Source: Lepidodermella squamata (lineage: Eukaryota; Animalia; Gastrotricha). Taken from it: a DNA stretch of 64,000 nucleotides. Below, one piece after another: positions 1 to 31,900 of this stretch (position 1 is its first letter; each line of letters starts with the position of its first letter). The stretch is taken from assembly GCA_047495785.1 (NCBI GenBank), contig JBLDXI010000033.1, forward strand, positions 62,001 through 126,000, given 5' to 3'. A program made the position numbers and the translations under genes. Below the pieces are notes generated by a model, which saw only the letters and a list, made by a program, of their open reading frames with translations, did no database searches and was not told where the DNA came from.

Positions 1-810
1 TGAAAATTAATACTACTGAATGTGTAAATATTGTAATCGGACAAAAAAATCTAGAATGTGTGGATGAAATTAAAGATCTGGGTGTTATTGTTGACAGCCG
101 TCTGACTTTCTCCAGCCAATGTGCCAAAACTGTTGCTAAAGCTAGGAAAATATGCGGTATGATTTTACGCTCGTTCCAAACGAAGAAAACTGAAATATTA
201 ATGAAAGCCTTTGACATTTATGTGTTACCCATCTTACTCTATTGTAGTACTGTTTGGTCTCCAAGACTAATTGGCGACCAAAAGTTATTGGAAGGTGTGC
301 AAAAAACATTTACCTGGCGCGTGATGAAAACGCATGACTACGAAAAAAGACTTCTAAAACTTAGCCGCTTAACTATTATTCAGCGTCACTTGGTTAGAGA
401 TATATGTGTAACTAATGATATATTGAAAGACAATGTTAATCTAGATACGAAATGTTTTTTCGATGTTAAAAAATCAAACTATGATACACGTAGCCATAAA
501 TATTTTCTCCTGATGCGTAAATCTCATCTTGATGTGCTATTTCATTTCTTTAGCTTTAGAGTTGTAAATAATTGGAACAAATTGCCAGCCTTTATAGTAG
601 ATATTAATGATCGACTAATCTTTAAAAACCATATAAAAAATATTATTACAAAAATATAATGTGAGTGGACAGGGCGCATATGTGTCCCTGGCTCCTGATC
701 GACTAATATATAATTTGTTATATATAATTAACTAGTATCTATGTGATAGATACATATATATATTCATCATGTTTACGGAGCAAAATAAAACTAAACTAAA
801 CTAAACTAAC
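1..810 (+). mobile_element. 3' end of a CR1/L2-like non-LTR retrotransposon (RT C-terminus, 3' UTR, tandem-repeat tail)
   Basis: The frame is open from the window edge to the stop at 659. It has CR1-type motifs KDLGVIVDSRLTFS, LLYCSTVWSP, LEGVQKTFT and FFSFRVVNNWNKLP. AATAAA at 784-789 is followed by (CTAAA)3 CTAAC at 791-810. Confidence 0.85.
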
Positions 811-3800
811 AAAAACAAGTTTAGCCTCGATCCTGATTGAATGAAGGGTTGAATTATACCCATACTGCGTTTTCCAGTCTGGTTAGATGAACAATGATTA
901 ACCCTCAAAAATGCACATTTTCACGTCATAATTTAATAACCCAGTGATTCTCAAACCCAGATTTTCCGGCCGGCAGAGGTCTGCCCATCTCCTGCATTGC
1001 GTGCGGCCGGAAGCTCTTTCGAAGGCAATAATTAAAGATATTTCCAACATGTTAGCGAATTTACAGCATGATTAGCCTCATCCGAACAAAAAATAACCAA
1101 ATTTATATGGCTATTTAAATATCCCAAATTAGGTACGTAAAATTATTCTGATCGAAAAATAATTGAAATTCACAACTTTTTTATGTACATGCCTAACATA
1201 AGATTCCCGAAATGGGACAAACTATGCAACAATTTTTCATTCATTTTTGTGTGATCTCGGCTAAATATAATAAGGCTAAATCGATAGACCACACTATCGA
1301 TTTCAGAGCCGATACTGATTTCGATTCGATTCGAGTATCGATTTTGATAATCAATGATTTTTCCGATATCAGAAGCATTGGAACCCAACATCAGATAAAA
1401 ATTATAAATTAAATAAAACTAAAATTCCAGGATTATTTGAGGCATTAAGATCGATAAAAAAGCTAATAATTGGACATTTGACATTTGAATAATTAAATAA
1501 TTGGAAATAATTGGACAAATTTAGGGCAAGAGTGCTTAAACCCTAAATCCTAAATTAGGTAGTGGCGCAACCAATTTTAGACACTTAAAAATTGGAATAA
1601 ACCCTGTTTTAAATAAGCATGAATTCCATATCGAAAGAAGTTAATAATCGATTAAATCAAGGCAAATCGTCAATTTTCCATGATGTCAATCCAACTTACA
1701 TCGACTGTTTTGCCGCTCACAGACTGCATACTGCTTCGCGAGATCGAAGCCCTGGCCGAACCAGCCCCTAACGTTGCCGGCATCATCGACGACTTCCTCA
1801 ACGCAGCCGAACCGGCCGGTCCACCAGGTCGACTCGCCTGGCCACTACCCGCCCTCTGTTGGTCCTTGATCCGCTCGTGATGTCGCTCCACCAACAACGC
1901 AGCTAGGACGTAGATTTTCTTCAACAGCATCGGACTTGTTACTCGCTGCGAGACGATCAGCGCATTTGAACAGCAGTTTAGCAGCGTCGAGGAAACGCTC
2001 GGCACGTCGGAAAAGTTCGGTAGCTGAAATAATTCGATTTTGTTCAATCATTTGTTGAGCCAGACGAGGCAGCATCAGCGGAACGTCAGACAGGCCGTGT
2101 TTCTCGGCTAAATCAACAGCTTTGCTCCATGAATTAAGCTGGATACAACAATCGACAGCCTCCCTAATTTTACCAGCCTGAAATAAATATTTAAAAAATT
2201 AAAAAATTATAGAAAAATTAAGAAAAAATTACTCACCCGAACATAGCAATTAACAGCTTGATCGCACAATCCTACACCTTGAAACATTTGGCCGACTTCC
2301 TAAAAATGACAAATATTGATAGAAATAAATTAGGTATTTATCTCGGATAATGTTGGTTATTTAGCAGCATTTTTTGAGGGGATTTCCTGCCTGGCTATAA
2401 TTCGACTTAGTTTTGAATCTGGATATTGCTTAATTTTTTTGATTTTTAAATTTTTGATATATTTTTTTATTTGCCTTCGCATTCCCCTTCCTCAAACCCG
2501 TGAGGGTATGAAAGATCAGTCGCGGGGAAGAGAAATGAAAATATCAATTTCAAATTATTGCACTAAAAAATTAAACTCAACAGATTGGAGGTAGAAACTT
2601 ACAGGTAGAAGCTTGTGACTATTAGGAAGAGCATTTGCTGCCTGTTCCAAATTAGCGTAATCTTCCAGCATGAAGTAGCATTCGACTAATCGTTCGGAAT
2701 TATGGGCTTGTTGTAAGTAAGTTACGGCTTGAAGCCATTGCTGGCGCTCGGCGTGGAATTCGCCTAAAGCTGTACACGCAGCTTCCAGTTCACGATCGTT
2801 TCCACCGCCCGAATCAGCCTTCAACAAGCTAACAACTCGCGTCCAATCGCCAAGCTTTTTTCGCAAAGCTACCGCCAAATCGCTGTAAAAAAAATACATT
2901 TAAAATTTGAAAAACAACTTTTCTAGTAAGCTTACAGCCGATCAGCTGCTCGAAACATTTGCTCAGCGCTATCGAATCGCTCGAAATAAGCTTCGACCTC
3001 TCCCTTTCGGAGGCGGTCATTTTGAAGCCGCTCGAGGTGTTGGACGAATTTGATGCCCGCATAATCACGGCATCTCACAAAAGCATGTTCTGCCATTTTC
3101 AAATTATTTTGCTCCAGAGCCGCATCAGCAAGTAGCTTCCAGAGTTTGGCATGGGAATTTGACTCGACAAACTTTTGAACATCGTTCAAGCTGCCTTTTT
3201 TCAACAACTCGCGAGCGTCGCGAAGAATTTTGATCTCCAAATTTAGCACGTATTCTGGGTTTGGTTCTTCGGGTGTTCGCAAAATTTCATCCAGCATCGC
3301 GACTCGAACTTGAAGTTCGGAGAATGAGCAAATGTAGCCTGACGTCAGAACAGGTTCTTCGAATTTCTCGTCTCGCAACACGCACAATTTAGTTTTTTCG
3401 AGGCATGTGAACATCGTGTTGTTATCTTCAGCCCACATCATGTCCCAAACGTCTTTTTTCTCATTCGATGCCGGTGGCTGAGCAGCATTTGCAGCAGGTT
3501 GCTCTACCGTGCCTTTAGCGGTGGCGTTATTTGCCGCTGGAGCATCTATTTGAACTGCCATAGGTTCGACTGTTTTCGTTTCAAGATTGTAGAACATCAA
3601 AACGCCACTGGTGTCAAGAATCGCGACTTTCGTGCTTTGAGAATTCAGAGAAAATCGGTATGGTCGAACAGTCAAGACAAATTTGTCAATCAATGCAACT
3701 TGGGGAAGTGAATAACAGTTCACAGTACCACTTTGACGACCCTAAAACGACGATAATAAGGCAAATATTTGCCAAAGGTAGCCAACTCACAATCAAAAGC

Positions 3801-4103
3801 AGCGTATCAGATGCTCCTATAGCAACAATCGGATCCTCGGTGGTCTAGAGGGAGATAACTCTTCAGAAAATTCTTCACAACTTGAAAAATTAACCAACCT
3901 TATAAATCTTATTCATGTCGATAGTATCGCTACCAATACCCGAAGGCGTTTCATCAATGTGATAGAGTTTCTCCGAAACCGTTTTCTGCCGTTCGAGTAA
4001 AAGGATTCTGTTTGGATCCAAATACTGCCAGACGTAAAAAGCCTCCTTCGATGCGCAAATAACGTTGTTTCGAGTCATCGTAAGAAAAACTGGCTCGAGA
4101 TCG

Positions 4104-4341
4104 TGTCACGGAAACATAAAACAGTCAACTGCTACCCTTAATGATTTATTCATTGAAAATAAACTGAACACCAGTCACTGGCAAATTGAGAGCTTAAGTA
4201 CTGACAATACTAGTTTGATAGAACGCACTACATAGCCTAATTAGTTATCACATGATCATATATCACAAGTCCTAGATCACAGCTATGGTTATTCATCTTA
4301 TTAGTCATGACCGGGATGCCGCCGTAACACCAATCGTTACA
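4104..4341 (-). repeat. 3' LTR (238 bp)
   Basis: Direct repeat of 5597-5834. On the minus strand it is preceded by the polypurine tract. Confidence 0.95.
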
Positions 4342-4914
4342 CCACACCCTCCTCAGGCCCCTTCTTCGCCGCGAGAGCAAACCGAAAATCGTAGAGGGCA
4401 ATTCAGGTCGAAAAATCGTAGAAACCATAGAAAACCATGAGCCTTGAACCTTGAATCATAAGCTGAATTGCGAACTCCAGTCGAGACGAAAGCCAGCAAG
4501 CCGAAATCGAGGGCACTGAGAGCAAGGCAGAGTGGAGCGAAAAAGAATCATCGAATCATTGGACATAACCGGAGCAAAATTTCCTGACCGCGTACACTTG
4601 ATAACATTTTGAGGAATATGGAAGAACCAAATAAGTGAAGTAGTTGACCAGTGACCGGCGAACAGAAGGATAGAGTGAAGTTGATGATTGATGAATTCGA
4701 AAGAGGCAAATTGATGAGGAACCTAAAAACTGTTGTTGTAGTGTTCAAAACCGGAAATCAACCAAAATTGAGAAATCCAAAGCATTGAGATCCGAAAGAA
4801 CATTGAAGACGATCACAAGATGAACCGATATCAAACCAGCATTGGCAAATTGATGCGTAAGCTGGAAAGAGACACAAGTACCATGGGTCCGAAAATCACG
4901 AATTCGACGTAGTT

Positions 4915-5270
4915 CCAAGCTTCAAATCCCTGGACCTCGAAGATGTCGTAGCGCCAAAGCGTAAAGAAGACAAGCTTGAGCCGGCGTTTCAACACAGCGA
5001 CTGCAGGGAGAATCAGCAAAACCGAGCGAGAAATTACCAGGCTTCAAACCACTGGACCTCGACAATGTCGCAGCACAATAACTTGGCCAGGCGACAAAGT
5101 GACTACAGCGATAATCAACCAGGTTCCAGAAATTCACGAAACACATCGGGGCCAAGGCTTCAATTCACAGGACCTCGAAGTTGTCGTATCACCAGAACGT
5201 AGCCAGGGCGGACCTTGAGCATTGGCTGGCGACCCGACAGCAGCGACTACAGCGAAAATCAACCAAGACC
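4915..5270. repeat. Three degenerate ~120-bp repeats inside the LTR element
   Basis: The motif gcttcaa...ggacctcga(a/c)..tgtcg recurs near 4915, 5037 and 5152. The motif gact(a/g)cag.ga.aatca recurs near 4998, 5099 and 5243. Confidence 0.7.
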
Positions 5271-5596
5271 ATTTTCCATTGAGCGAAGCCAGGACTTGTC
5301 CAACCAACGACCAAGAAAACAGACGTGCGAGCCGGTTCAGAACCTAGAGCCTTTTGACGCTGGTTTCTAAATTGATCACGACAGTCGGCGACGAACGACA
5401 GAGGGACATAGATCGGCGAAGCGCAAAGCCAGAGAACATTGAGTCGACAAATCGGAGCACCAAACGCGAGCCAGGGCTAGGCCTAGAAAGCAAGGCGTCG
5501 GCGCGATCGGAAAAATCGTTAAACAAAGACTTGGCTAAGCTCGAAGTAAGGGTGGCAGCTGACCGCACGAGAAAAGAAATTAGGTTCAGTTTATTT

Positions 5597-5834
5597 TGTC
5601 ACGGAAACATAAAACAGTCAACTGCTACCCTTAATGATTTATTCATTGAAAATAAACTGAACACCAGTCACTGGCAAATTGAGAGCTTAAGTACTGACAA
5701 TACTAGTTTGATAGAACGCACTACATAGCCTAATTAGTTATCACATGATCATATATCACAAGTCCTAGATCACAGCTATGGTTATTCATCTTATTAGTCA
5801 TGACCGGGATGCCGCCGTAACACCAATCGTTACA
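5597..5834 (-). repeat. 5' LTR (238 bp) with TATA-like TACTTAAG, Inr-like TCAGT and AATAAA
   Basis: The minus strand reads TGTAACG...TACTTAAG...GTTCAGTTTATTTT...AATAAA...CGTGACA. Confidence 0.9.
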
Positions 5835-7513
5835 GATCGGTGTACCGAGTGTCCATAGATATGCCTAGGGCATTGCACAAAAAGAGAGCGTATTGGCTTG
5901 ATGGATCATCAGATCGACAAGCCAAGCAGCAGAAATCGCCTCCGCCAGTCATTCGATACAGTTGACGTACCGGTCGTATTTGACGCTAAATTGTTTACAC
6001 TATTTCATATCTATTATATTTAATTACAAAATCTTACCAGATTTTTGCGAATATTCCAGAACATTACAAATTGCTCTTCAGTATTGGCTTTGTTGAAAGC
6101 ATAGGCCAAAGTATTGGTACAGTAAGCCCACTGAAAATTCCCGAATGAATTCATTATTTGATTATCGGAAACTCAAAATTACTTTGTATTCTGGCCGAAT
6201 ATTGGCGAAGTAAATGTAGGAGTCGATGGCAAGAGCTAGGCGGAGACCAGTCGCTTCCCATGAACAAGCCGTTACGGCTCGTCCGGGTAATTTTACACTT
6301 CGTAGATAGACCCCAGTGTTTGTGTAAAAATTCACAACGTTGATATCTCTATCTCGATCTCGTTCCGTGTCTCGAACGGACTGTTGACCAGTCACGGCGA
6401 GTATTTTACCGTCAGGGCTCCAGCGAGCGCAAGTAGCTTTGACACCAGACTCGACGGCCATGTATGCTAAAAGTGAACATTACCGTTATCGTTCAAGAAG
6501 CTCAATATCGCATGACTTACTTGAGTCTGATTCATTTTTCAGCAAGTAAATGTCACCAGTCTTAAACACTATTGCGAGAACGGCGGCGGCAGGATCCGTT
6601 GAGCGTCCATTAAACCAATGAACTGCTGCTAATTCTCCTGGAGTTTGGTCGAATTCTATCTTGGCAACTTTGTTTCCCTGATTGTCGTACACGAACACCT
6701 CGCCCTCCGAATTTCCAAACAAAATCAATCGACCGTTCGGTGACCACTCGCATTGGTGTAGGCGCATTCCAAGGTCTTTCCCCCAGATGCGATTGCCATC
6801 AACAGAGCCAACAATTACAGTTCCTTTGAAATTATTCCTCTTTCGTCACGGTTTTGACATTCAAATAGGGACATACCGTCTTCGTAAGAGATGCAGATTT
6901 TTTCACCGCTGTAATTCCACCGCATATCGCGAACCATTGACTTGGTGCGATTATTTATCATCTCCTCATAGAGATTTCCTAGAATTATGATGGAACTAAT
7001 CGATAATGCTAGCTCAGTAATTAGTAGGCTTACCCTTGTACACCATCCAAACGATGATGAGGCCATTATCATCACTCGAGGTGAGCTTCTTACTGCGTTC
7101 ATTCCATACCACAACCCTGATTGCGCCTGTTAGCCACATTAGTATTTTCAGGAAAAATTAATATTCTAAGCAGCGTAACCCACCAGTGTGACCCTCGAGC
7201 GTCTGGTTAGTCGAAAGATTTGATGGAGCCGCTAATCCACGCAACCTCGGCTCGTTGCCTGCAAGAGGCAATAAAACAGAGAACTGAAATATTTCTTTAA
7301 TGCAAACATTCTGAACTCACCCGATGATGATTCGAGCTTGAGAACTTTCAATAAGTTCCCTTCGCAGCCGCAAGCAATGTAACCGTCTGTCTGATCCCAA
7401 CATATCGATGACACGTTGGCATTGTTCGGGACGGAGATCTGCAAGGGACTCTCAAATTACACGAGTTACTTCCAATAATGGAAATTTACCTTTTTACTAA
7501 GATACGCAAACAT

Positions 7514-16013: not shown

Positions 16014-18329
16014 TTACTCCCTCATCTTTTGATATAAGAAAATGGCGAAAGTAGAAGATGAGTAGAACACCAGTCCCATCGCCAACAACAGTATTTTTCC
16101 GCAATCTCGGGCTACATTGGACATGATAACTAGAACCAGGACAAGCGCCATTAGAAGCACAGCTTGATTAAGAGCGGCGAGGATCACTGATTTCAACTCG
16201 CGTTGTAGAATTGCAGAAGTTTCTTTGACTTTCCTTAATCGGTTGCAAATGAACAACGAAGCGATCATAAGAAGGAAATCAATCGAAAACACCAAACTTT
16301 GCATTTGGGTCACATGTGGAGTGACACAAATATGGTCGATATAATCGACGTAGGAGTTCAAACTTGAATCGAAAACAGGCTTTGACGTTGTTATGGAGTG
16401 TCGAGATGTGTAAATGACTGAATATACCACCAAAATGACGAGCTGCCCAAAGCAGTAGCTGATCGCTATGGCAAGGTACTTCCGAACAAGTATTTTGCCA
16501 AGGCTTTCGATTGATAAGAAAAACGCTTGACTTTCGGATTCTTCCTTGCGCTTCTTTTTCTCATTGAAGACTCCCTGCACGTTGACGATAGCATATAACC
16601 GAGATGATGCATTTCTAATTGGAACTTTTTTGACTGCTGAAAAGAACCAAACAGCGTGCAGGAAAACAAAAGCATTCGGCAAGGACATGGCAAAGTTGAA
16701 AACCAAATTGCGAATCGAACATTCGAAATCAAGAAACCAGGTAGCTCCAATTACGATCAGCATTGCAACGGAGTTCATAAAGAGACAGAGCAATAGAAGT
16801 ATCACTACATTCATTTTTCTGAAAATCCCAGATTGACCATTTCGTTTTAACGCAATGATGGTAGCGTAGCACTGAGCGATAGAGATGATGGCTGAAATGA
16901 TTGGAAAAACTTCTTCCCGGTCACAAAATGCAGTTATATTGAGTTCATCTGACAAATCTTTCGGCGCACTGTTACCGGGCCAGTAGGGCTTTTTCATAAT
17001 TGTGAATTCGTAGCTGCTCAGATTGAAAATTGCCCTATTTTTCTTGACAAGTTTCGCAAGAAGATCGGGCTTTCCCTTCCGCATTTGAACAATCCACAAG
17101 TCATCCCCAAATACATCTCCGAGTTTGCTAAAGGCAAGTCTGCCCAGCCTGAGTCCGTTAATATCAGTGTTTTCAGATACGGCTCGTACAACATCCGCAA
17201 CAAGTTCAGGATCCTTTTTAAAACTAGCTAGGCTTTCGTTGTAATTCGATCGCAGAATCCTGTCTGCTTTATCAGCGTTCATAATTGCTGTCAAAATCGC
17301 GTCATGACATAGGTATCGTGTGGAAAAATCTGTGCTATTAGTATAAGATGTCATGTAGGCGTCGAATTCTGCTACGGAGTAGCCTAGACTCGTTCGGCCG
17401 GTAGACTTATTTACCGGAAAAGGAAGCGACCCTGTGAAGAAGTATATCTCTAGCTGCTCCATAACCATTGACATAGTACATCCTGCAGGTAGGGCAGGGT
17501 CTGGCTGATCGATTTCGAAAGCGCACCATAGCAAATTGATGAAAGCATAGTAGGGCGCGCGCATTCCGACAACGTGAGACAGGCATAAGAACTTCAAACA
17601 AGTCGCTCCAGAGGACAAGGATAAGACAATTATTCTTGCATCACTGGGTTTCAACTCGTTCGCGACTTCTAAATCAATGTCATAGACGCTGTCGTAGTGA
17701 AGAACGGATATGTCGTTCGCAGAAGCAATTTCATTCATTCTTTCCGCTACAAGGTATTCGTTAGAGTTGTTGGCGTTAGTCAAAATCGCTATTTCTCTCC
17801 AATTTCCGATTAATTTGAGAAAAGCTAACCCAGCTATTACGTTTGCATCGGTAGCTGTTGACACCGTGAACAAGGACGAGTAAAGCTGCGATCTTCTAAA
17901 GAGAGGTGGACCACTGCAACGGGGTGAGTATTCAGTGAGCTGAAGATGTTTTAATGTCAATGCAACATTATTACACGAACCTGATGGGCCAAACACAAGC
18001 GGAGCCATAATACTGTTCGGACTCTCCTCCTGCTTTCGATAGAAATCAATAGCTGCTGCATTAGCTTTATCTGCACCAATTCCCTCATCCTCGCTTTGCA
18101 CTTGGAAAACATAATTTCCAAGAATATCTTTTCGAGGATTCACCACATCAATAACGAACTGTACAGCGGCTTCACAGGCTGATGATGGAGCCGAATTAGT
18201 CGCGTTACTTCTAGGCAGTAATGCCAGCATTGTAAGGTAAACGGTAGAGTTGTCATCCTGAGCGAGAATTGGACGGTCACTCCATAAAGCCATCACCAAA
18301 ACGAAGAAACTTTGAAACATGCGAGCCAT
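16014..18329 (-). CDS. Intronless divergent class C (GABA-B-like) GPCR, copy 1
   Basis: 771 aa. Signal peptide, then a Venus-flytrap-like domain (EAAVQFVIDVVNPRKDILGNY, GNWREIAIL, LKPSDARIIV, CHDAIL), no Cys-rich domain, seven hydrophobic segments, and a stop about 5 aa after TM7. Confidence 0.8.
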   Translation of the reverse strand: MARMFQSFFVLVMALWSDRPILAQDDNSTVYLTMLALLPRSNATNSAPSSACEAAVQFVIDVVNPRKDILGNYVFQVQSEDEGIGADKANAAAIDFYRKQEESPNSIMAPLVFGPSGSCNNVALTLKHLQLTEYSPRCSGPPLFRRSQLYSSLFTVSTATDANVIAGLAFLKLIGNWREIAILTNANNSNEYLVAERMNEIASANDISVLHYDSVYDIDLEVANELKPSDARIIVLSLSSGATCLKFLCLSHVVGMRAPYYAFINLLWCAFEIDQPDPALPAGCTMSMVMEQLEIYFFTGSLPFPVNKSTGRTSLGYSVAEFDAYMTSYTNSTDFSTRYLCHDAILTAIMNADKADRILRSNYNESLASFKKDPELVADVVRAVSENTDINGLRLGRLAFSKLGDVFGDDLWIVQMRKGKPDLLAKLVKKNRAIFNLSSYEFTIMKKPYWPGNSAPKDLSDELNITAFCDREEVFPIISAIISIAQCYATIIALKRNGQSGIFRKMNVVILLLLCLFMNSVAMLIVIGATWFLDFECSIRNLVFNFAMSLPNAFVFLHAVWFFSAVKKVPIRNASSRLYAIVNVQGVFNEKKKRKEESESQAFFLSIESLGKILVRKYLAIAISYCFGQLVILVVYSVIYTSRHSITTSKPVFDSSLNSYVDYIDHICVTPHVTQMQSLVFSIDFLLMIASLFICNRLRKVKETSAILQRELKSVILAALNQAVLLMALVLVLVIMSNVARDCGKILLLAMGLVFYSSSTFAIFLYQKMRE

Positions 18330-19456
18330 TTGAAAACGCAGTAAAATGAATTGTTTGAATTGTACGCGATCTGTCCTATTGAAACGTGAATGAGCTAAAT
18401 CGAATCAACTTTACGACCTATATACTTGTTTACCAAGCAAGGTATTAAATTTCAGCAAAAGCGGAAGCTTTCATCATATACCGTACCAAATTGATTTCCG
18501 AAATCACCTGTGTCTTTATGTTAATTCTTATGGCTGTCAAAGGAAAAAGCAGTCATGCATTACTAACTAATTGGAAAGTGGGCGGTGACTGCCACGCATT
18601 CTTCGTATCGAATTCAGCACTGTCCACTTTAAAAATCTAATCCTATCAAATCCGAATCCGATAAAGTCCTAATGACCCATTTGATGTAGCGACTTCTTCA
18701 CGCTCCTCTCCGTTGATTATAATATTGTCACCGTCTTGAAGTTGTATAAGAAGTGATATGAACTGTGAACTGTGTATTTGATAAAATGCAAGTGACGGCG
18801 GTATCACAATAAAGAACCCTCGTGTGACATCGATGCTTCTTTGTTTCAAGTCTCGACATGAATCGAGTTCGATTCAAGCATATATAGTCCGTGTCGATTG
18901 TCCGTGTCGATAAATTCGAGAGAAACATGATCTATGATCTATCTATGAGTAATCTATGGAATCAGGACCAGCAATAACTCGAATTCTACTCGGTTTCTCG
19001 ATCATGAAGGGATCGCGCGCCCTTATTCCGTGGGTCGCCGAGTCAGCCGGGGGTCGCGGGGGTCGCCTGATGGTTTTCATAAACTTGAAAATTGCGAAAA
19101 TTTGGTTTATTTTTAGTCACTCTTCCAGGGAAAATCTTAAAAAAAAAGCGTTGGCTAAATCGCTTCGCTCGTATCCAATTTTATTCCACTGAAAACGGTC
19201 TGAAATTGCGGTTGAGAGCCGAGTTCATGTAAATTTTGAGAAAAATGCTGTGCATTGGGTGATATTTTATTGCTTGAACAAAAAATGTTTGAAGTTTTGA
19301 AACATTTGACACGGCATGTATGTCCATTCGACTCACCATATAAAAAAGCAGAAATATAACATTGAATATTACCTATCAATTGTTCAACTCAAAATGTAAT
19401 GATTTCCGATCTTTGAGATGCGAGATGTTTGCAAGGAAATGTTTTCAGGAAATTAT

Positions 19457-21772
19457 TTACTCCCTCATCTTTTGATATAAGAAAATGGCGAAAGTAGAAG
19501 ATGAGTAGAACACCAGTCCCATCGCCAACAACAGTATTTTTCCGCAATCTCGGGCTACATTGGACATGATAACTAGAACCAGGACAAGCGCCATTAGAAG
19601 CACAGCTTGATTAAGAGCGGCGAGGATCACTGATTTCAACTCGCGTTGTAGAATTGCAGAAGTTTCTTTGACTTTCCTTAATCGGTTGCAAATGAACAAC
19701 GAAGCGATCATAAGAAGGAAATCAATCGAAAACACCAAACTTTGCATTTGGGTCACATGTGGAGTGACACAAATATGGTCGATATAATCGACGTAGGAGT
19801 TCAAACTTGAATCGAAAACAGGCTTTGACGTTGTTATGGAGTGTCGAGATGTGTAAATGACTGAATATACCACCAAAATGACGAGCTGCCCAAAGCAGTA
19901 GCTGATCGCTATGGCAAGGTACTTCCGAACAAGTATTTTGCCAAGGCTTTCGATTGATAAGAAAAACGCTTGACTTTCGGATTCTTCCTTGCGCTTCTTT
20001 TTCTCATTGAAGACTCCCTGCACGTTGACGATAGCATATAACCGAGATGATGCATTTCTAATTGGAACTTTTTTGACTGCTGAAAAGAACCAAACAGCGT
20101 GCAGGAAAACAAAAGCATTCGGCAAGGACATGGCAAAGTTGAAAACCAAATTGCGAATCGAACATTCGAAATCAAGAAACCAGGTAGCTCCAATTACGAT
20201 CAGCATTGCAACGGAGTTCATAAAGAGACAGAGCAATAGAAGTATCACTACATTCATTTTTCTGAAAATCCCAGATTGACCATTTCGTTTTAACGCAATG
20301 ATGGTAGCGTAGCACTGAGCGATAGAGATGATGGCTGAAATGATTGGAAAAACTTCTTCCCGGTCACAAAATGCAGTTATATTGAGTTCATCTGACAAAT
20401 CTTTCGGCGCACTGTTACCGGGCCAGTAGGGCTTTTTCATAATTGTGAATTCGTAGCTGCTCAGATTGAAAATTGCCCTATTTTTCTTGACAAGTTTCGC
20501 AAGAAGATCGGGCTTTCCCTTCCGCATTTGAACAATCCACAAGTCATCCCCAAATACATCTCCGAGTTTGCTAAAGGCAAGTCTGCCCAGCCTGAGTCCG
20601 TTAATATCAGTGTTTTCAGATACGGCTCGTACAACATCCGCAACAAGTTCAGGATCCTTTTTAAAACTAGCTAGGCTTTCGTTGTAATTCGATCGCAGAA
20701 TCCTGTCTGCTTTATCAGCGTTCATAATTGCTGTCAAAATCGCGTCATGACATAGGTATCGTGTGGAAAAATCTGTGCTATTAGTATAAGATGTCATGTA
20801 GGCGTCGAATTCTGCTACGGAGTAGCCTAGACTCGTTCGGCCGGTAGACTTATTTACCGGAAAAGGAAGCGACCCTGTGAAGAAGTATATCTCTAGCTGC
20901 TCCATAACCATTGACATAGTACATCCTGCAGGTAGGGCAGGGTCTGGCTGATCGATTTCGAAAGCGCACCATAGCAAATTGATGAAAGCATAGTAGGGCG
21001 CGCGCATTCCGACAACGTGAGACAGGCATAAGAACTTCAAACAAGTCGCTCCAGAGGACAAGGATAAGACAATTATTCTTGCATCACTGGGTTTCAACTC
21101 GTTCGCGACTTCTAAATCAATGTCATAGACGCTGTCGTAGTGAAGAACGGATATGTCGTTCGCAGAAGCAATTTCATTCATTCTTTCCGCTACAAGGTAT
21201 TCGTTAGAGTTGTTGGCGTTAGTCAAAATCGCTATTTCTCTCCAATTTCCGATTAATTTGAGAAAAGCTAACCCAGCTATTACGTTTGCATCGGTAGCTG
21301 TTGACACCGTGAACAAGGACGAGTAAAGCTGCGATCTTCTAAAGAGAGGTGGACCACTGCAACGGGGTGAGTATTCAGTGAGCTGAAGATGTTTTAATGT
21401 CAATGCAACATTATTACACGAACCTGATGGGCCAAACACAAGCGGAGCCATAATACTGTTCGGACTCTCCTCCTGCTTTCGATAGAAATCAATAGCTGCT
21501 GCATTAGCTTTATCTGCACCAATTCCCTCATCCTCGCTTTGCACTTGGAAAACATAATTTCCAAGAATATCTTTTCGAGGATTCACCACATCAATAACGA
21601 ACTGTACAGCGGCTTCACAGGCTGATGATGGAGCCGAATTAGTCGCGTTACTTCTAGGCAGTAATGCCAGCATTGTAAGGTAAACGGTAGAGTTGTCATC
21701 CTGAGCGAGAATTGGACGGTCACTCCATAAAGCCATCACCAAAACGAAGAAACTTTGAAACATGCGAGCCAT
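19457..21772 (-). CDS. Class C GPCR, copy 2
   Basis: Translation identical to copy 1. Confidence 0.8.
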   Translation of the reverse strand: MARMFQSFFVLVMALWSDRPILAQDDNSTVYLTMLALLPRSNATNSAPSSACEAAVQFVIDVVNPRKDILGNYVFQVQSEDEGIGADKANAAAIDFYRKQEESPNSIMAPLVFGPSGSCNNVALTLKHLQLTEYSPRCSGPPLFRRSQLYSSLFTVSTATDANVIAGLAFLKLIGNWREIAILTNANNSNEYLVAERMNEIASANDISVLHYDSVYDIDLEVANELKPSDARIIVLSLSSGATCLKFLCLSHVVGMRAPYYAFINLLWCAFEIDQPDPALPAGCTMSMVMEQLEIYFFTGSLPFPVNKSTGRTSLGYSVAEFDAYMTSYTNSTDFSTRYLCHDAILTAIMNADKADRILRSNYNESLASFKKDPELVADVVRAVSENTDINGLRLGRLAFSKLGDVFGDDLWIVQMRKGKPDLLAKLVKKNRAIFNLSSYEFTIMKKPYWPGNSAPKDLSDELNITAFCDREEVFPIISAIISIAQCYATIIALKRNGQSGIFRKMNVVILLLLCLFMNSVAMLIVIGATWFLDFECSIRNLVFNFAMSLPNAFVFLHAVWFFSAVKKVPIRNASSRLYAIVNVQGVFNEKKKRKEESESQAFFLSIESLGKILVRKYLAIAISYCFGQLVILVVYSVIYTSRHSITTSKPVFDSSLNSYVDYIDHICVTPHVTQMQSLVFSIDFLLMIASLFICNRLRKVKETSAILQRELKSVILAALNQAVLLMALVLVLVIMSNVARDCGKILLLAMGLVFYSSSTFAIFLYQKMRE

Positions 21773-22899
21773 TTGAAAACGCAGTAAAATGAATTGTTTG
21801 AATTGTACGCGATCTGTCCTATTGAAACGTGAATGAGCTAAATCGAATCAACTTTACGACCTATATACTTGTTTACCAAGCAAGGTATTAAATTTCAGCA
21901 AAAGCGGAAGCTTTCATCATATACCGTACCAAATTGATTTCCGAAATCACCTGTGTCTTTATGTTAATTCTTATGGCTGTCAAAGGAAAAAGCAGTCATG
22001 CATTACTAACTAATTGGAAAGTGGGCGGTGACTGCCACGCATTCTTCGTATCGAATTCAGCACTGTCCACTTTAAAAATCTAATCCTATCAAATCCGAAT
22101 CCGATAAAGTCCTAATGACCCATTTGATGTAGCGACTTCTTCACGCTCCTCTCCGTTGATTATAATATTGTCACCGTCTTGAAGTTGTATAAGAAGTGAT
22201 ATGAACTGTGAACTGTGTATTTGATAAAATGCAAGTGACGGCGGTATCACAATAAAGAACCCTCGTGTGACATCGATGCTTCTTTGTTTCAAGTCTCGAC
22301 ATGAATCGAGTTCGATTCAAGCATATATAGTCCGTGTCGATTGTCCGTGTCGATAAATTCGAGAGAAACATGATCTATGATCTATCTATGAGTAATCTAT
22401 GGAATCAGGACCAGCAATAACTCGAATTCTACTCGGTTTCTCGATCATGAAGGGATCGCGCGCCCTTATTCCGTGGGTCGCCGAGTCAGCCGGGGGTCGC
22501 GGGGGTCGCCTGATGGTTTTCATAAACTTGAAAATTGCGAAAATTTGGTTTATTTTTAGTCACTCTTCCAGGGAAAATCTTAAAAAAAAAGCGTTGGCTA
22601 AATCGCTTCGCTCGTATCCAATTTTATTCCACTGAAAACGGTCTGAAATTGCGGTTGAGAGCCGAGTTCATGTAAATTTTGAGAAAAATGCTGTGCATTG
22701 GGTGATATTTTATTGCTTGAACAAAAAATGTTTGAAGTTTTGAAACATTTGACACGGCATGTATGTCCATTCGACTCACCATATAAAAAAGCAGAAATAT
22801 AACATTGAATATTACCTATCAATTGTTCAACTCAAAATGTAATGATTTCCGATCTTTGAGATGCGAGATGTTTGCAAGGAAATGTTTTCAGGAAATTAT

Positions 22900-25215
22900 T
22901 TACTCCCTCATCTTTTGATATAAGAAAATGGCGAAAGTAGAAGATGAGTAGAACACCAGTCCCATCGCCAACAACAGTATTTTTCCGCAATCTCGGGCTA
23001 CATTGGACATGATAACTAGAACCAGGACAAGCGCCATTAGAAGCACAGCTTGATTAAGAGCGGCGAGGATCACTGATTTCAACTCGCGTTGTAGAATTGC
23101 AGAAGTTTCTTTGACTTTCCTTAATCGGTTGCAAATGAACAACGAAGCGATCATAAGAAGGAAATCAATCGAAAACACCAAACTTTGCATTTGGGTCACA
23201 TGTGGAGTGACACAAATATGGTCGATATAATCGACGTAGGAGTTCAAACTTGAATCGAAAACAGGCTTTGACGTTGTTATGGAGTGTCGAGATGTGTAAA
23301 TGACTGAATATACCACCAAAATGACGAGCTGCCCAAAGCAGTAGCTGATCGCTATGGCAAGGTACTTCCGAACAAGTATTTTGCCAAGGCTTTCGATTGA
23401 TAAGAAAAACGCTTGACTTTCGGATTCTTCCTTGCGCTTCTTTTTCTCATTGAAGACTCCCTGCACGTTGACGATAGCATATAACCGAGATGATGCATTT
23501 CTAATTGGAACTTTTTTGACTGCTGAAAAGAACCAAACAGCGTGCAGGAAAACAAAAGCATTCGGCAAGGACATGGCAAAGTTGAAAACCAAATTGCGAA
23601 TCGAACATTCGAAATCAAGAAACCAGGTAGCTCCAATTACGATCAGCATTGCAACGGAGTTCATAAAGAGACAGAGCAATAGAAGTATCACTACATTCAT
23701 TTTTCTGAAAATCCCAGATTGACCATTTCGTTTTAACGCAATGATGGTAGCGTAGCACTGAGCGATAGAGATGATGGCTGAAATGATTGGAAAAACTTCT
23801 TCCCGGTCACAAAATGCAGTTATATTGAGTTCATCTGACAAATCTTTCGGCGCACTGTTACCGGGCCAGTAGGGCTTTTTCATAATTGTGAATTCGTAGC
23901 TGCTCAGATTGAAAATTGCCCTATTTTTCTTGACAAGTTTCGCAAGAAGATCGGGCTTTCCCTTCCGCATTTGAACAATCCACAAGTCATCCCCAAATAC
24001 ATCTCCGAGTTTGCTAAAGGCAAGTCTGCCCAGCCTGAGTCCGTTAATATCAGTGTTTTCAGATACGGCTCGTACAACATCCGCAACAAGTTCAGGATCC
24101 TTTTTAAAACTAGCTAGGCTTTCGTTGTAATTCGATCGCAGAATCCTGTCTGCTTTATCAGCGTTCATAATTGCTGTCAAAATCGCGTCATGACATAGGT
24201 ATCGTGTGGAAAAATCTGTGCTATTAGTATAAGATGTCATGTAGGCGTCGAATTCTGCTACGGAGTAGCCTAGACTCGTTCGGCCGGTAGACTTATTTAC
24301 CGGAAAAGGAAGCGACCCTGTGAAGAAGTATATCTCTAGCTGCTCCATAACCATTGACATAGTACATCCTGCAGGTAGGGCAGGGTCTGGCTGATCGATT
24401 TCGAAAGCGCACCATAGCAAATTGATGAAAGCATAGTAGGGCGCGCGCATTCCGACAACGTGAGACAGGCATAAGAACTTCAAACAAGTCGCTCCAGAGG
24501 ACAAGGATAAGACAATTATTCTTGCATCACTGGGTTTCAACTCGTTCGCGACTTCTAAATCAATGTCATAGACGCTGTCGTAGTGAAGAACGGATATGTC
24601 GTTCGCAGAAGCAATTTCATTCATTCTTTCCGCTACAAGGTATTCGTTAGAGTTGTTGGCGTTAGTCAAAATCGCTATTTCTCTCCAATTTCCGATTAAT
24701 TTGAGAAAAGCTAACCCAGCTATTACGTTTGCATCGGTAGCTGTTGACACCGTGAACAAGGACGAGTAAAGCTGCGATCTTCTAAAGAGAGGTGGACCAC
24801 TGCAACGGGGTGAGTATTCAGTGAGCTGAAGATGTTTTAATGTCAATGCAACATTATTACACGAACCTGATGGGCCAAACACAAGCGGAGCCATAATACT
24901 GTTCGGACTCTCCTCCTGCTTTCGATAGAAATCAATAGCTGCTGCATTAGCTTTATCTGCACCAATTCCCTCATCCTCGCTTTGCACTTGGAAAACATAA
25001 TTTCCAAGAATATCTTTTCGAGGATTCACCACATCAATAACGAACTGTACAGCGGCTTCACAGGCTGATGATGGAGCCGAATTAGTCGCGTTACTTCTAG
25101 GCAGTAATGCCAGCATTGTAAGGTAAACGGTAGAGTTGTCATCCTGAGCGAGAATTGGACGGTCACTCCATAAAGCCATCACCAAAACGAAGAAACTTTG
25201 AAACATGCGAGCCAT
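22900..25215 (-). CDS. Class C GPCR, copy 3
   Basis: Translation identical to copy 1. Confidence 0.8.
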   Translation of the reverse strand: MARMFQSFFVLVMALWSDRPILAQDDNSTVYLTMLALLPRSNATNSAPSSACEAAVQFVIDVVNPRKDILGNYVFQVQSEDEGIGADKANAAAIDFYRKQEESPNSIMAPLVFGPSGSCNNVALTLKHLQLTEYSPRCSGPPLFRRSQLYSSLFTVSTATDANVIAGLAFLKLIGNWREIAILTNANNSNEYLVAERMNEIASANDISVLHYDSVYDIDLEVANELKPSDARIIVLSLSSGATCLKFLCLSHVVGMRAPYYAFINLLWCAFEIDQPDPALPAGCTMSMVMEQLEIYFFTGSLPFPVNKSTGRTSLGYSVAEFDAYMTSYTNSTDFSTRYLCHDAILTAIMNADKADRILRSNYNESLASFKKDPELVADVVRAVSENTDINGLRLGRLAFSKLGDVFGDDLWIVQMRKGKPDLLAKLVKKNRAIFNLSSYEFTIMKKPYWPGNSAPKDLSDELNITAFCDREEVFPIISAIISIAQCYATIIALKRNGQSGIFRKMNVVILLLLCLFMNSVAMLIVIGATWFLDFECSIRNLVFNFAMSLPNAFVFLHAVWFFSAVKKVPIRNASSRLYAIVNVQGVFNEKKKRKEESESQAFFLSIESLGKILVRKYLAIAISYCFGQLVILVVYSVIYTSRHSITTSKPVFDSSLNSYVDYIDHICVTPHVTQMQSLVFSIDFLLMIASLFICNRLRKVKETSAILQRELKSVILAALNQAVLLMALVLVLVIMSNVARDCGKILLLAMGLVFYSSSTFAIFLYQKMRE

Positions 25216-28994: not shown

Positions 28995-31900
28995 TCAAGC
29001 TGATGTAAGTTGTGAGATTTTACGGATAAGTTCTTCGGGCAAACAGAAAACTTCCTTAGCGATTTGATTGATAGTCTCTTTGTTTTTGTTCCGATGCGTA
29101 ACCAAGAATTTAGATTCGGGCAGGTCAAGTAAATGTGACACGACAGAGAAAGATTTATCCCTCAGTGCCACGCCGAGAACATTGTCACCATTGTCGGCCG
29201 TCGCCCAAAGACTAGCACCTTTCGACAGTAGATATTTGAAAATATTCAAGTTGTCAGTTCTCGATGACACAAGAAGTGGTGTCAGATGGTCAGACGTGCA
29301 TGATTCGATCATATGCCAAGTTTTTTGAAGCAAATAATCGACACAGTCAGTCCCTTTCAGACCCGCCGCTGCTGAGTGGAGTGGGGTCCACAGAAAATCA
29401 TCGACAACTTTTTCGCTTTCAGGGTAGAGATCCATGGCATACTTCAACAGTTCAAGATTTCCAGACCATGCGCAATGGTGAATTAGGGTTTCCCCGTTAG
29501 AATCTCTAGCTTTTAAATCAGCCCCACGCTCGAGCAACAACTTAACTACATCCAAATGCCCGCTTTCAGCCGCTATCAGGAGAGGGGTGACACCCTCACC
29601 ATTAACGACTTCGAGCAAATCTGGAAATGTCTCGCATAGTTTCTGAACAATTTCAACATGACCGTTGTCAGCAGCGAGAGATAGCAACGACTGGCCGAAC
29701 TTATCTCGTTGCAATGCGGCATCTGGCGAATGATTAAGCAAAAATTTAACTATTTCCGACTTTCCCGTCGAGCATGCCACGGCTATTGGCGTACGCTCTT
29801 TTTCCAAGTCAGCTATTTTAAAATCGGCACCTTTATCAATTAGGTATTTGACGACTTCAAGATTGCCACTACTGCAAGCCAAATGAGCAGCAGTTTGCGC
29901 AGCAACCCCACTGTCTCTTGCGTTCAAGTCAAAAGAACAATCCTCGACCAAATACTTGACTACATCTAATTGCCCCGCCAGAGCGGCATCATGAAGGCAA
30001 TTTGATCCGTGGTGATCTGTTTGTTCCATCAACTCCGGCTTCTTCTCAAGAGCAACTTTCATCACGTCTAAACGACCGTGCTTAGCTGCGATATGAGAGG
30101 TCGCCCTTTGGTTCGAATCAATAGCTAATGGGTCGGCACCAAGCGCCAGAAGGTAGTTAATTGCTTCAAGCGAACCAGAAGCAGCAGCCTGAAGCAGAGG
30201 GGTTCGTTCGGAATCTCGTTTGTCGCGGTGTTCAATGACCAATTTGACAAAGTTTTTCGGAATTCGGCCAATGACGTCCTTGAGGGCTTCGATTTCTCCA
30301 CGGGAAGCGGCTGCGTGAAATTCGTGGTATGGATCAGTCTAGATTAGGAAAACGTTGAGAAAAATTAAATTAGGAATATCGAAACTTCAATTTCGCTCAA
30401 CAAATCGACAACATATATGCTTTCAAGGGGTCTGACTACCGTGCTCATCGCCCCGGCTATCGGCTATCGGGTGCTCATCTACGCTGTTGCTGATCTGCGG
30501 GATCACCCCTCGCCTGCCTATGTCGTGGTTTGCGCGCAAAAGGCGCTCAGGAGCACCCGGCTGTGAAGGTTGAAGCCTCGAGGAATCTCATTGATCTACA
30601 CGCTATCGTTCCTTTGTACCAGCGTATCTTTAAATACTGGCCAACAACAACTAACCGATGAGCAAATGGACGATTTGCAGGCAATAGTCGTCGCCGAAGT
30701 AATACATTTGAGAAACGCGTTCAGCTTCATAAAGCGGCTGAACAAGTTGTGGTTTAGTGCGCTCACCCTGGCGCGCTGTTGGTAGGAAAGGTTCCGCTAC
30801 CTGGAAGTTATCGTTGGAGCGATAAAACGGCATATGGCAAGGGAGATACAAAGTTGGAAATTGACAACACCGATTGCTACAGCGCTGCAACAAAGAAACA
30901 AGCTGCAGCGCCTTCATCCACATACGGAAAAAGCTTATATTAAAACCACCCTGAATGCCGCCATCTCAAAGCAAATAGAAAATCTGGTCGCGAAGAAAAT
31001 TGCAATGACTGTGAGCTCTGCCTCCGAGCTATGACAGAAAACTTCAACAGCAAAACCGGCATGGGTCTGATCTAATGAATCTACTGAAAAAACACGAGGT
31101 GCAAACGCAGTTGTTGGCCGCAAGACAAGACCGCAAAAGGCAAATCCATCACCGACGGCAAGGCAAAAGCTGAACTCATTGCCAAGACATTCGCCAAAGC
31201 AGTCTCAACTCCTGTTGTGACATCAGCATTCAGCTCAGATCACGATTTCTGGCGTGCGATAGAGGATGGGATCGAGTCTAACCCAGCCGCACAGCCAATA
31301 TGCATGCCAGAAAAGCTGAATCTCGAAATCTTCAATGAAAGAATTGTTTAAAAAGCTATAATAATTCAATGCTCTCGGTCATGAAGAAATATCAAACAAT
31401 GTGATTAAAATGGTGGTCCAAGCCTCTCACTTACGCCTTATGAACAGAGCCTGAATTGCGGCTATGTACTATGTACCAAAGACTTGGAAGATCGGGATTA
31501 TAAGTTAATAGTTAATAGAAACTTGCCATCCAGCCACCAGTTCGGATTTTGGCGAGGCAAAAGCGCCACAGATACCCCATTCCGTCTGGTCAACGACGTG
31601 GTCATAGCCCTTTCCGTCACGACACTGGAAGCTAGTCACTATAGCCCTGAACTTCAATAGCACATTTGACGTAGTATCGTAATCATGATCGCCTCTAGAT
31701 GATCGCCTCTAGAATTTTGCCGTCGGTCGGGCCCGTGGCTTACGAGAAGTGTAGTAGACATTGCCTATGCCATGAAGCCGGGGTGCCTAGAAAGGCTGCA
31801 GCCGAGCTATCTCGAGCTGGAGCATGTGTTGGGTCGTATTCTTACCTCAAAATTGTTGCGTTTCACTACTCTGACAATCGATGTATCTTCGCAATATCGA

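Follow-up and report, generated by a model that had tools for sequence, protein, structure and literature searches.

A non-autonomous LTR retrotransposon with a predicted Tf1-type self-priming site in the gastrotrich Lepidodermella squamata

The window analysed here, a stretch of 64,000 nucleotides (nt) from the gastrotrich Lepidodermella squamata (GenBank assembly GCA_047495785.1, contig JBLDXI010000033.1, positions 62,001 to 126,000 of the forward strand), contains a long terminal repeat (LTR) element of 1731 bp at positions 4104-5834, whose sense strand is the minus strand. Its LTRs (4104-4341 and 5597-5834) begin with TGT, end with ACA and are 100% identical. A preliminary description of the locus, made from the sequence of the window, had proposed that this is a non-coding element whose primer binding site (PBS) pairs with RNA of the element itself and not with a tRNA, as in Tf1 of fission yeast. 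The non-coding character was borne out: five of the longest internal open reading frames (ORFs; 66-124 amino acids, aa) gave zero matches in Pfam, tblastx detected no similarity between the internal region and the gag-pol of the candidate helper introduced below, and Rfam returned nothing in or around the element. A repeat search of the interior revealed about three tandem units, each of about 120 nt, at 4919-5265. The element is a non-autonomous LTR retrotransposon, larger than a classic terminal-repeat retrotransposon in miniature (TRIM). Here we describe the complementarity at its LTR boundary, follow it through related lineages, and weigh the replication mechanism to which it points.

Complementarity at the LTR boundary

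On the minus strand, the bases from 5597 to 5584 read AAAATAAACTGAAC, the first A being the final base of the 5' LTR (...GTGACA), and TGG is absent after the LTR. The reverse complement of this stretch, GTTCAGTTTATTTT, is found 51 nt apart from it at 5662 to 5649 in the same LTR, and the two are 100% complementary over 14 nt. Both direct reading and an inverted-repeat search reproduced this part of the preliminary description. When the LTR was shuffled, a complement of at least 14 nt to the 19-nt junction stretch appeared in 0 of 5000 trials. Within the family of the window element (family 1, or mini1), the motif is exact in all LTR copies that cover it except a solo LTR in C34, which has a change at base 9.

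The genome searched comprises 121 Mb in 151 contigs. Seven lineages from it were compared: mini1 (window and C23), the related subfamily mini2 (C29), and the autonomous lineages autA (C20), autB (C32), autC (C16), autE (C3) and autF (C46). In each of the seven, a motif in the LTR pairs with a site 0-3 nt after the lineage's own 5' LTR, and five different primer/PBS sequence pairs exist among them. The mini2 motif, GCTCAGTCTATCGT, and its post-LTR site, ACAATAGACTGAGC, differ from mini1 at four motif positions, three of which are changed on both sides with pairing kept; position 12 is a mismatch. The autA LTR has ATTCTGGTTATTTT and, at the LTR end, AAAATAACCAGAAT, with 14/14 bases paired; three positions differ from the mini1 pair and all three are changed on both sides. 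In autB and autC, whose LTRs have diverged elsewhere, ATTCTGGTTATTT and its complement are retained, and the motifs of autE, AATTGTAATAT, and autF, AGTTTGTATTAT, are each matched by the post-LTR site of their own lineage.

A pair table made directly from eight copies of the seven lineages has positions 1-11 Watson-Crick paired in 8/8 copies, with mismatches or wobbles only at positions 12-14. In alignment A1, which has five rows, pairing holds in 98.6% of cells and both sides change in 6 of the 14 pairs, values that were reached by 0/500 shuffles; with the partner slid by 1-3 columns, pairing falls to 33-48% with no double changes. The autB pair at position 14 in A1 is a MAFFT artefact, the T lying two bases further on, and the true duplex is 13 bp. 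In an eight-row MAFFT alignment (A3) the PBS register was wrong for autE and autF, and this alignment was excluded from the counts. Taken lineage by lineage, complements of 11-14 nt were reached by 0-5 of 5000 shuffles. Older helper-type copies at C1:1564818 and C4:2693749 have one mismatch within positions 1-11. The preliminary description had made conservation of the pairing in related copies, with compensatory change, a point on which its proposal would stand or fall; pairing in seven lineages and double-sided changes in 6/14 pairs agree with it.

Sixteen genomic sites with a 16-mer that resembles the junction/PBS of the helper clade at one mismatch were considered as new subfamilies; 15 of the 16 were rejected as chance matches without LTR context and served as a negative control. 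The best upstream complement (within 130 nt or less) at these sites is 4-8 nt long. The complementarity between the repeated (R) region of the LTR and the PBS is not a product of chance.

The remaining one of the 16 sites (in C25) has a real LTR context, of another family. This further, tentative LTR family (L066, L046/L070; G000:C26:348303..., G000:C25:2079640-2080050) ends in ...ACTGACA followed by a helper-type PBS, which has an A>G change in one copy. The best candidate for its R motif is ATTTTGGTTATTT, some 150 nt away from the LTR end, and its pairing would involve one or two G.U. In addition, two of the three places that contain the exact mini1 14-mer outside the family (L061 and L062; G000:C28:363435-363648 and G000:C34:1358747-1358960) are mutually reverse-complementary copies of one other repeat, which contains CAAAATAAACAAAATAAACTGAAC and is not a tRNA gene.

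The position of the motif within the LTR is that expected of a transcript start. The preliminary description had placed an initiator-like TCAGT of the motif about 30 nt after an upstream sequence and just before AATAAA, and this arrangement was confirmed, a TATA-like box starting 31 nt before the motif and AATAAA starting 20 nt into it. Across all lineages, TATA-like boxes start 30-32 nt before the first paired base (TACTTAAG, TATTTAAG, TATAATAA, TATAAG, TTTAAAG and TATATAAA in the lineage set), and in the seven lineages AATAAA lies 20-30 nt after it. This spacing of box, motif and AATAAA is kept though the flanking LTR sequence differs. Because of the TATA-box and AATAAA geometry we read the motif as the start of R, that is, as the predicted 5' end of the RNA, with initiation at or a few bases upstream of 5662. 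In autF only, the A of the initiator-like TCAGT is base 1 of the motif.

When short R-to-PBS segments were folded, the R/PBS helix was the minimum free energy (MFE) structure in 5/5 lineages, with z from -2.5 to -3.7. Small hairpins appeared in these folds within the loop that it closes. Longer leaders of both mini subfamilies preferred an 18-bp stem between U5, the LTR part downstream of R, and a leader arm some 25 nt beyond the PBS. This possible U5-leader stem is mostly conserved, without clean compensatory change (alignment A2), and would bracket the PBS in the manner of a retroviral U5-leader stem. A single molecule cannot nest it with the R/PBS helix, so a pseudoknot, alternative conformers or pairing between two packaged RNAs may be involved. 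The features of the window element are listed in Table 1.

Table 1. Features of the LTR element, in window coordinates (TSD, target-site duplication)
Feature	Position	Strand	Basis
TSD GATCG, left copy	4099-4103		Direct reading; identical to 5835-5839; single copy kept in the run X1 empty-site contig
3' LTR, 238 nt, TG...CA ends, second R-motif copy at 4156-4169	4104-4341	minus	Repeat search; 100% identical to 5597-5834
Polypurine tract (PPT) GAGGAGGGTGTGG, directly 5' of 3' LTR	4342-4354	minus	Direct reading; same PPT/LTR junction in the C20 helper
Non-coding internal region, 1255 nt	4342-5596	minus	ORF, Pfam, tblastx and repeat analyses
Leader arm of possible U5-leader stem, pairs with 5615-5632	5548-5565	minus	MFE folds in both mini subfamilies; alignment A2
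PBS AAAATAAACTGAAC, starts with last LTR base	5584-5597	minus	14/14 pairing; pair table; covariation counts
5' LTR, 238 nt	5597-5834	minus	Repeat search
U5 arm AAGGGTAGCAGTTGACTG of possible U5-leader stem	5615-5632	minus	MFE folds; alignment A2
AATAAA polyadenylation signal, 20 nt into predicted R	5638-5643	minus	Direct reading
Self-primer motif GTTCAGTTTATTTT, predicted transcript nt 1-14, R start 5662	5649-5662	minus	Inverted-repeat pair; shuffles
TATA-like box TACTTAAG, starts 31 nt before motif	5686-5693	minus	Promoter-register comparison across lineages
TSD GATCG, right copy	5835-5839		Direct reading

Helper clade, chimeric LTRs and recent insertion

The preliminary description had predicted an autonomous self-priming partner that could be found with the LTR as query. 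A likely partner was found by another route. Genome searches with the mini LTR and internal region recovered only mini copies, solo LTRs and fragments, none of them beside an integrase match, so that a partner with the same LTR did not emerge. The pattern of the PPT/LTR junction led instead to an identical 18-mer adjoining an integrase match in C20 (locus L041), and thereby to autA, which has an intact gag-pol with a chromodomain together with the LTR tips, R core and PPT of the mini-element. autA is 4869 bp long, with 214-nt LTRs that have one difference between them, a TSD of ACATC and one ORF of 1454 aa. Pfam matches along this ORF comprise Retrotrans_gag, DUF4939, Ty3_capsid, zf-CCHC, a protease, RVT_1 and RT_RNaseH, followed in the C-terminal part by Integrase_H2C2, rve, SH3_Tf2-1 and Chromo (residues 1394-1444). 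The order gag, protease, reverse transcriptase (RT), RNase H and integrase, with a chromodomain at the integrase's C-terminal end, is that of a chromovirus. Against solved structures the best match was Ty3 Gag-Pol (E 1.6e-145), and the gag part matched the PEG10 capsid (4.5e-10). By its predicted protein, the helper is a chromodomain-bearing Ty3/gypsy element with a single gag-pol frame. Its gag matches (DUF4939 and PEG10 capsid) presumably reflect a gag of sushi-type origin.

When the genome was searched with the helper Pol protein, the clade, at 57-100% identity, stood apart from other gypsy elements at 30-43%; about 150 integrase-bearing elements are present in the genome. Besides autA, the clade includes autB, with identical 188-nt LTRs and TSD GTAAT, and autE, with identical 245-nt LTRs and TSD GAGCG; the LTR/PBS junctions of autC and autF were also read. 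Helper ORFs are intact. By eye, the sequence upstream of the autB 5' LTR in C32 (L043, about 430-1200, minus strand) looks like coding sequence rich in Cys/Asp repeats resembling LDL-receptor class A, and autB seems to have inserted into it or next to it.

The mini-element and autA have only certain parts in common: 10 nt at the start of the LTR, a stretch of about 30 nt spanning the R motif and AATAAA (90%), the PPT and LTR start (25 nt, 96%), and the LTR end. These are the parts needed by integrase, for strand transfer and for plus-strand priming. An intact gag-pol element of the autA type is the likely helper of the mini-element.

Family 1 is small, with two full copies (window and C23), one 5'-truncated copy in C11 and several solo LTRs, several of which carry 5-bp duplications. 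The full copy in C23 is 4051 bp long, with TSD GCTAC and a 2.2-kb extra insert. mini2, about 75% identical, has a complete copy of 1790 bp in C29, with TSD GCAGC and LTRs of 255 nt that are identical to each other, and is also present as a solo LTR in C16. Altogether, 5-bp TSDs were found at at least seven other insertions of the family. The extra segment of about 2.2 kb in the C23 copy (L023 2381-4579; G000:C23:760880-763078) includes an ORF of 88 aa, whose helix-turn-helix matches (HTH_Tnp_IS630, BrkDBD) are weak and fall below the Pfam cut-offs; the segment may be a captured fragment or a piece of a nested transposon. At another locus (L014; G000:C9:3056652-3056766), two 5' LTR fragments of 42 and 67 nt stand head to head as a near-palindrome.

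Two solo LTRs join mini and helper sequence. At C20:56942 (L027 6943-7174, TSD ATATC) and C42:141407 (L029 about 6575-6340, TSD GATAG), mini1 U3, the LTR part upstream of R, and R bases 1-28 are followed by U5 of the autA type. In both, the switch point is the R core common to mini and helper. We infer that these chimeric LTRs arose when helper-type strong-stop DNA jumped to the 3' R of a mini RNA, a jump that would require helper and mini RNAs in one particle. The mini-type first bases of R would be expected in such chimeras if the strong-stop DNA excluded the cleaved-off primer bases. The sequence CTGAAC after the LTR at C20:56942 was considered as a degenerate PBS and rejected, since it belongs to the flank of a solo LTR with TSD ATATC.

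Evidence on the age of the window insertion came from Logan contigs of two DNA runs, X1, probably of the same species, and X2, of a differently coded organism whose flanks are about 2% different. One X1 contig joins 3813-4097 to 5834 and so skips 1736 bp, the element plus one TSD copy, while other X1 contigs cross into the element; filled and precise empty sites thus coexist in this run, as heterozygosity or population polymorphism. Contig depths in X1 are not readable as allele shares. In X2 the family is present beside different flanking sequence. Because filled and empty sites coexist and the LTRs are identical, the insertion is supported as recent. Recent activity of the element, which the preliminary description had called currently active, is supported by the identical LTRs, the intact TSD and the precise empty-site contig in a run that also holds the filled site.

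A WDR35/IFT121-like gene, with exons that extend to about 7500, has the element in one of its introns, and gene and element share their orientation. Its exon at 3893-4078 (minus strand) gives a match to Pfam Beta-prop_WDR35_2nd, the second beta-propeller of WDR35 (E 4.7e-10), and the insertion could affect the transcripts of this gene because each LTR contains an AATAAA. Elsewhere in the window, three tandem ORFs of 771 aa occupy 16014-25215 on the minus strand (16014-18329, 19457-21772 and 22900-25215) at a spacing of 3443 bp; for the first of them there is no exact product on record. Two ORFs of 415 aa (28995-30242 and 33417-34664) lie 4422 bp apart. Both sets look like recent tandem gene duplications.

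Proposed replication and rival explanations

We consider it probable, at roughly 0.8, that the window element replicates by self-priming of the Tf1 type, using the first bases of its own RNA. We infer from sequence the start of the RNA, the cleavage by RNase H, the priming itself and the helper copy that would serve the element. Transcription would start in the 5' LTR at 5662 or a few bases to either side of it, about 31 nt past the TATA-like box. RNA nt 1-11 to 1-14 would then fold back onto 5597-5584, or pair with it between two packaged copies. Cutting of the paired 5' end by the RT/RNase H of the helper would leave behind a short RNA primer, which would be extended into minus-strand strong-stop DNA through U5 and R. 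This DNA would transfer to the 3' R, whose core, TTATTTTCAATGAATAAATCA, is common to the helper. The PPT would prime the plus strand, and integrase would make the 5-bp duplication. Gag, protease, RT/RNase H and integrase would all be supplied in trans by the autonomous single-ORF Ty3/gypsy clade. Synthesis of plus-strand strong-stop DNA would copy the primer into the PBS, so that changes at the start of R would pass to the PBS. Each lineage would keep its own matched pair because the primer is copied back in this way, and the mini-element would therefore need no PBS sequence of the helper type. Mismatches confined to bases beyond base 11 fit such copy-back.

Several points weigh against this reading. 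That the motif is the RNA 5' end is predicted from promoter geometry, and if the TCAGT of mini1 marked position +1, the RNA would begin at base 5 of the motif with 10 paired bases left; the register across lineages favours base 1 (5662), or a few bases upstream, over this A. In extended mini folds the U5-leader stem competes or pseudoknots with the R/PBS helix. The covariation comes from few lineages in one genome, and part of it is expected mechanically from primer copying, so that it supports the primer relation and is not independent evidence of selection. For the helper, autA is single-copy in the assembly, its class was assigned by domain content, and its assignment to the mini-element draws on common cis parts and chimeric LTRs, there being no autonomous element with the mini-element's own LTR. 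The shorter side of the X1 empty-site joint has 30 letters, one below the bridging rule.

The PBS might instead be bound by an RNA of the host, be it a tRNA, a piece of one or some other small RNA, with the match in the LTR incidental. tRNA priming is the default for LTR elements, and priming by half-tRNAs or internal tRNA sequence occurs in copia-type elements (PMC6317226); moreover, our genome-wide check was confined to the exact 14-mer. Yet TGG is absent after the LTR, and five host RNAs would be needed, each mirrored in the LTR at the same position relative to the promoter. The 14-mer occurs 16 times in the 121 Mb, 13 times in LTR/PBS sequences of the family and at three places without a tRNA gene. 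In the window and the examined loci no tRNA was found, and Rfam again gave nothing. We find a host primer scarcely credible, and the tRNA independence of the site asserted in the preliminary description holds in that the 14-mer is in no tRNA gene and R/PBS pairing is kept in seven lineages. The helix could also be real with a different role, for example in masking the promoter-proximal AAUAAA, in packaging or in dimerisation, while priming takes another route. It does close a loop that holds AAUAAA, an alternative local hairpin covers AAUAAA in extended folds, and the chromovirus relatives Skipper and SM-Tcn1 have unexplained priming (PMC5006619, PMC2864245). This is nonetheless quite unlikely: in every lineage the 3' arm occupies the place required of a PBS, 0-3 nt after the LTR, no other PBS candidate is present, and the perfect block at 1-11 with mismatches only beyond it matches both the 11-nt primer of Tf1 (PMC7175516) and primer copy-back.

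Self-priming might also act in trans, the 5' end of one packaged RNA priming on the PBS of a second packaged RNA in place of folding back in cis. A single mini molecule could hold both the U5-leader stem and the R/PBS helix only as a pseudoknot, and co-packaging of two RNAs would fit the chimeric LTRs; against this, the helix is the MFE structure of the short segments in all five lineages folded, and three positions distinguish the mini PBS from the primer of the helper, which leaves another mini RNA as the only possible primer in trans. We regard trans priming as unlikely, although it is the most plausible of the alternatives. That the element is an old, dead relic, its LTRs made identical by gene conversion or assembly collapse, would suit the small size of the family (two full mini1 copies, one truncated, several solo LTRs). 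It appears highly improbable beside the coexistence of filled and precise empty sites in X1, the 100% identical LTRs, perfect TSD and intact cis signals, the intact helper ORFs, and the presence of the family at a different site in the related sample X2. Tf1-type self-priming by the element's own RNA therefore remains the reading that we prefer.

Relation to known self-priming elements and significance

In Tf1 bases 1-11 of the RNA are the primer, which is cut between bases 11 and 12 (PMC7175516, PMC4600332); our comparisons with Tf1 draw on these two papers and on PMC5341516. Self-priming is proven only for Tf1 and Tf2 and has been proposed for fungal relatives, for vertebrate sushi-type elements and for plant Tcn1/TAR (PMC4600332, PMC6317226, PMC6934838). 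Like Tf1 and Tf2 of S. pombe and Tj1 of S. japonicus, the window element has a PBS directly after the 5' LTR that is complementary to the predicted RNA 5' end. It resembles Tf1 also in the 11-base perfect core and the 5-bp TSDs, and its helper does so in the single gag-pol ORF and in an integrase that ends in a chromodomain and matches Pfam SH3_Tf2-1. Unlike Tf1, the window element resides in an animal and is non-coding and helper-dependent, and the duplex reaches 13-14 bp in several lineages. The likeness to Tf1 is one of architecture, with RNA start and cleavage predicted. Tf1 itself also has a U5-IR-like stem, a stem-loop of U5 close to its PBS.

Animal chromodomain Ty3/gypsy elements for which self-priming has been proposed are known from the vertebrate Tf1/sushi group, such as sushi-ichi (Butler et al. 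2001, cited in PMC4600332 and PMC6317226). The described sushi members are autonomous, unlike the window element, whose host is moreover an invertebrate. For plant Tcn1/TAR, self-priming was likewise predicted from LTR/PBS complementarity alone, and Tcn1 groups with Tf1/sushi; those elements are, unlike the present one, autonomous and from plant or fungal hosts, and the survey in question contains no evidence from cross-lineage covariation or polymorphism (PMC6317226).

With TRIMs and large retrotransposon derivatives (LARDs) of plants, ants and bivalves (PMC6934838, PMC3532108), the element shares short LTRs, a non-coding interior, a PBS and PPT, mobilisation in trans and ends in common with a helper. 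Its 238-bp LTRs lie within the 100-250 bp of TRIMs; its total of 1731 bp exceeds their usual length of less than about 1 kb, and its PBS pairs with its own LTR where that of TRIMs is complementary to a tRNA. Because of its size and the lack of a tRNA PBS it falls outside the definition of a TRIM; the description that suits it best is that of a non-autonomous derivative from a clade of self-priming chromodomain elements.

A literature search found no report of self-priming in an invertebrate or in a non-autonomous element, its coverage being incomplete and the result no proof of novelty. The element is probably a new animal case of Tf1-type self-priming, in a non-autonomous form. Taken together, the results may describe the first documented non-autonomous self-priming LTR retrotransposon and the first invertebrate self-priming chromodomain clade. 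Private primer/PBS pairs would be rewritten in each cycle, so that the parasite could drift away from the helper PBS and still use the helper's enzymes; the 11-base primer rule would extend from fission yeast to animals, and the chimeric LTRs would record co-packaging and strand transfer. We put forward this joint reading tentatively, with the odds a little against it.

The genome combines young lineages with five primer/PBS pairs, an intact helper clade, a non-coding passenger, chimeric LTRs and a polymorphic insertion. It thereby offers a compact system for asking what the enzyme recognises in a self-primer, its structure or its sequence, what length the primer has, and in what way the RNAs of parasite and helper share particles. 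LTR-annotation pipelines that demand a PBS of the tRNA type will overlook or misclassify such elements. Bivalve TRIMs lack an identifiable PBS, no mechanism has been put forward for them (PMC6934838), and a re-examination of these elements for self-priming may be worthwhile.

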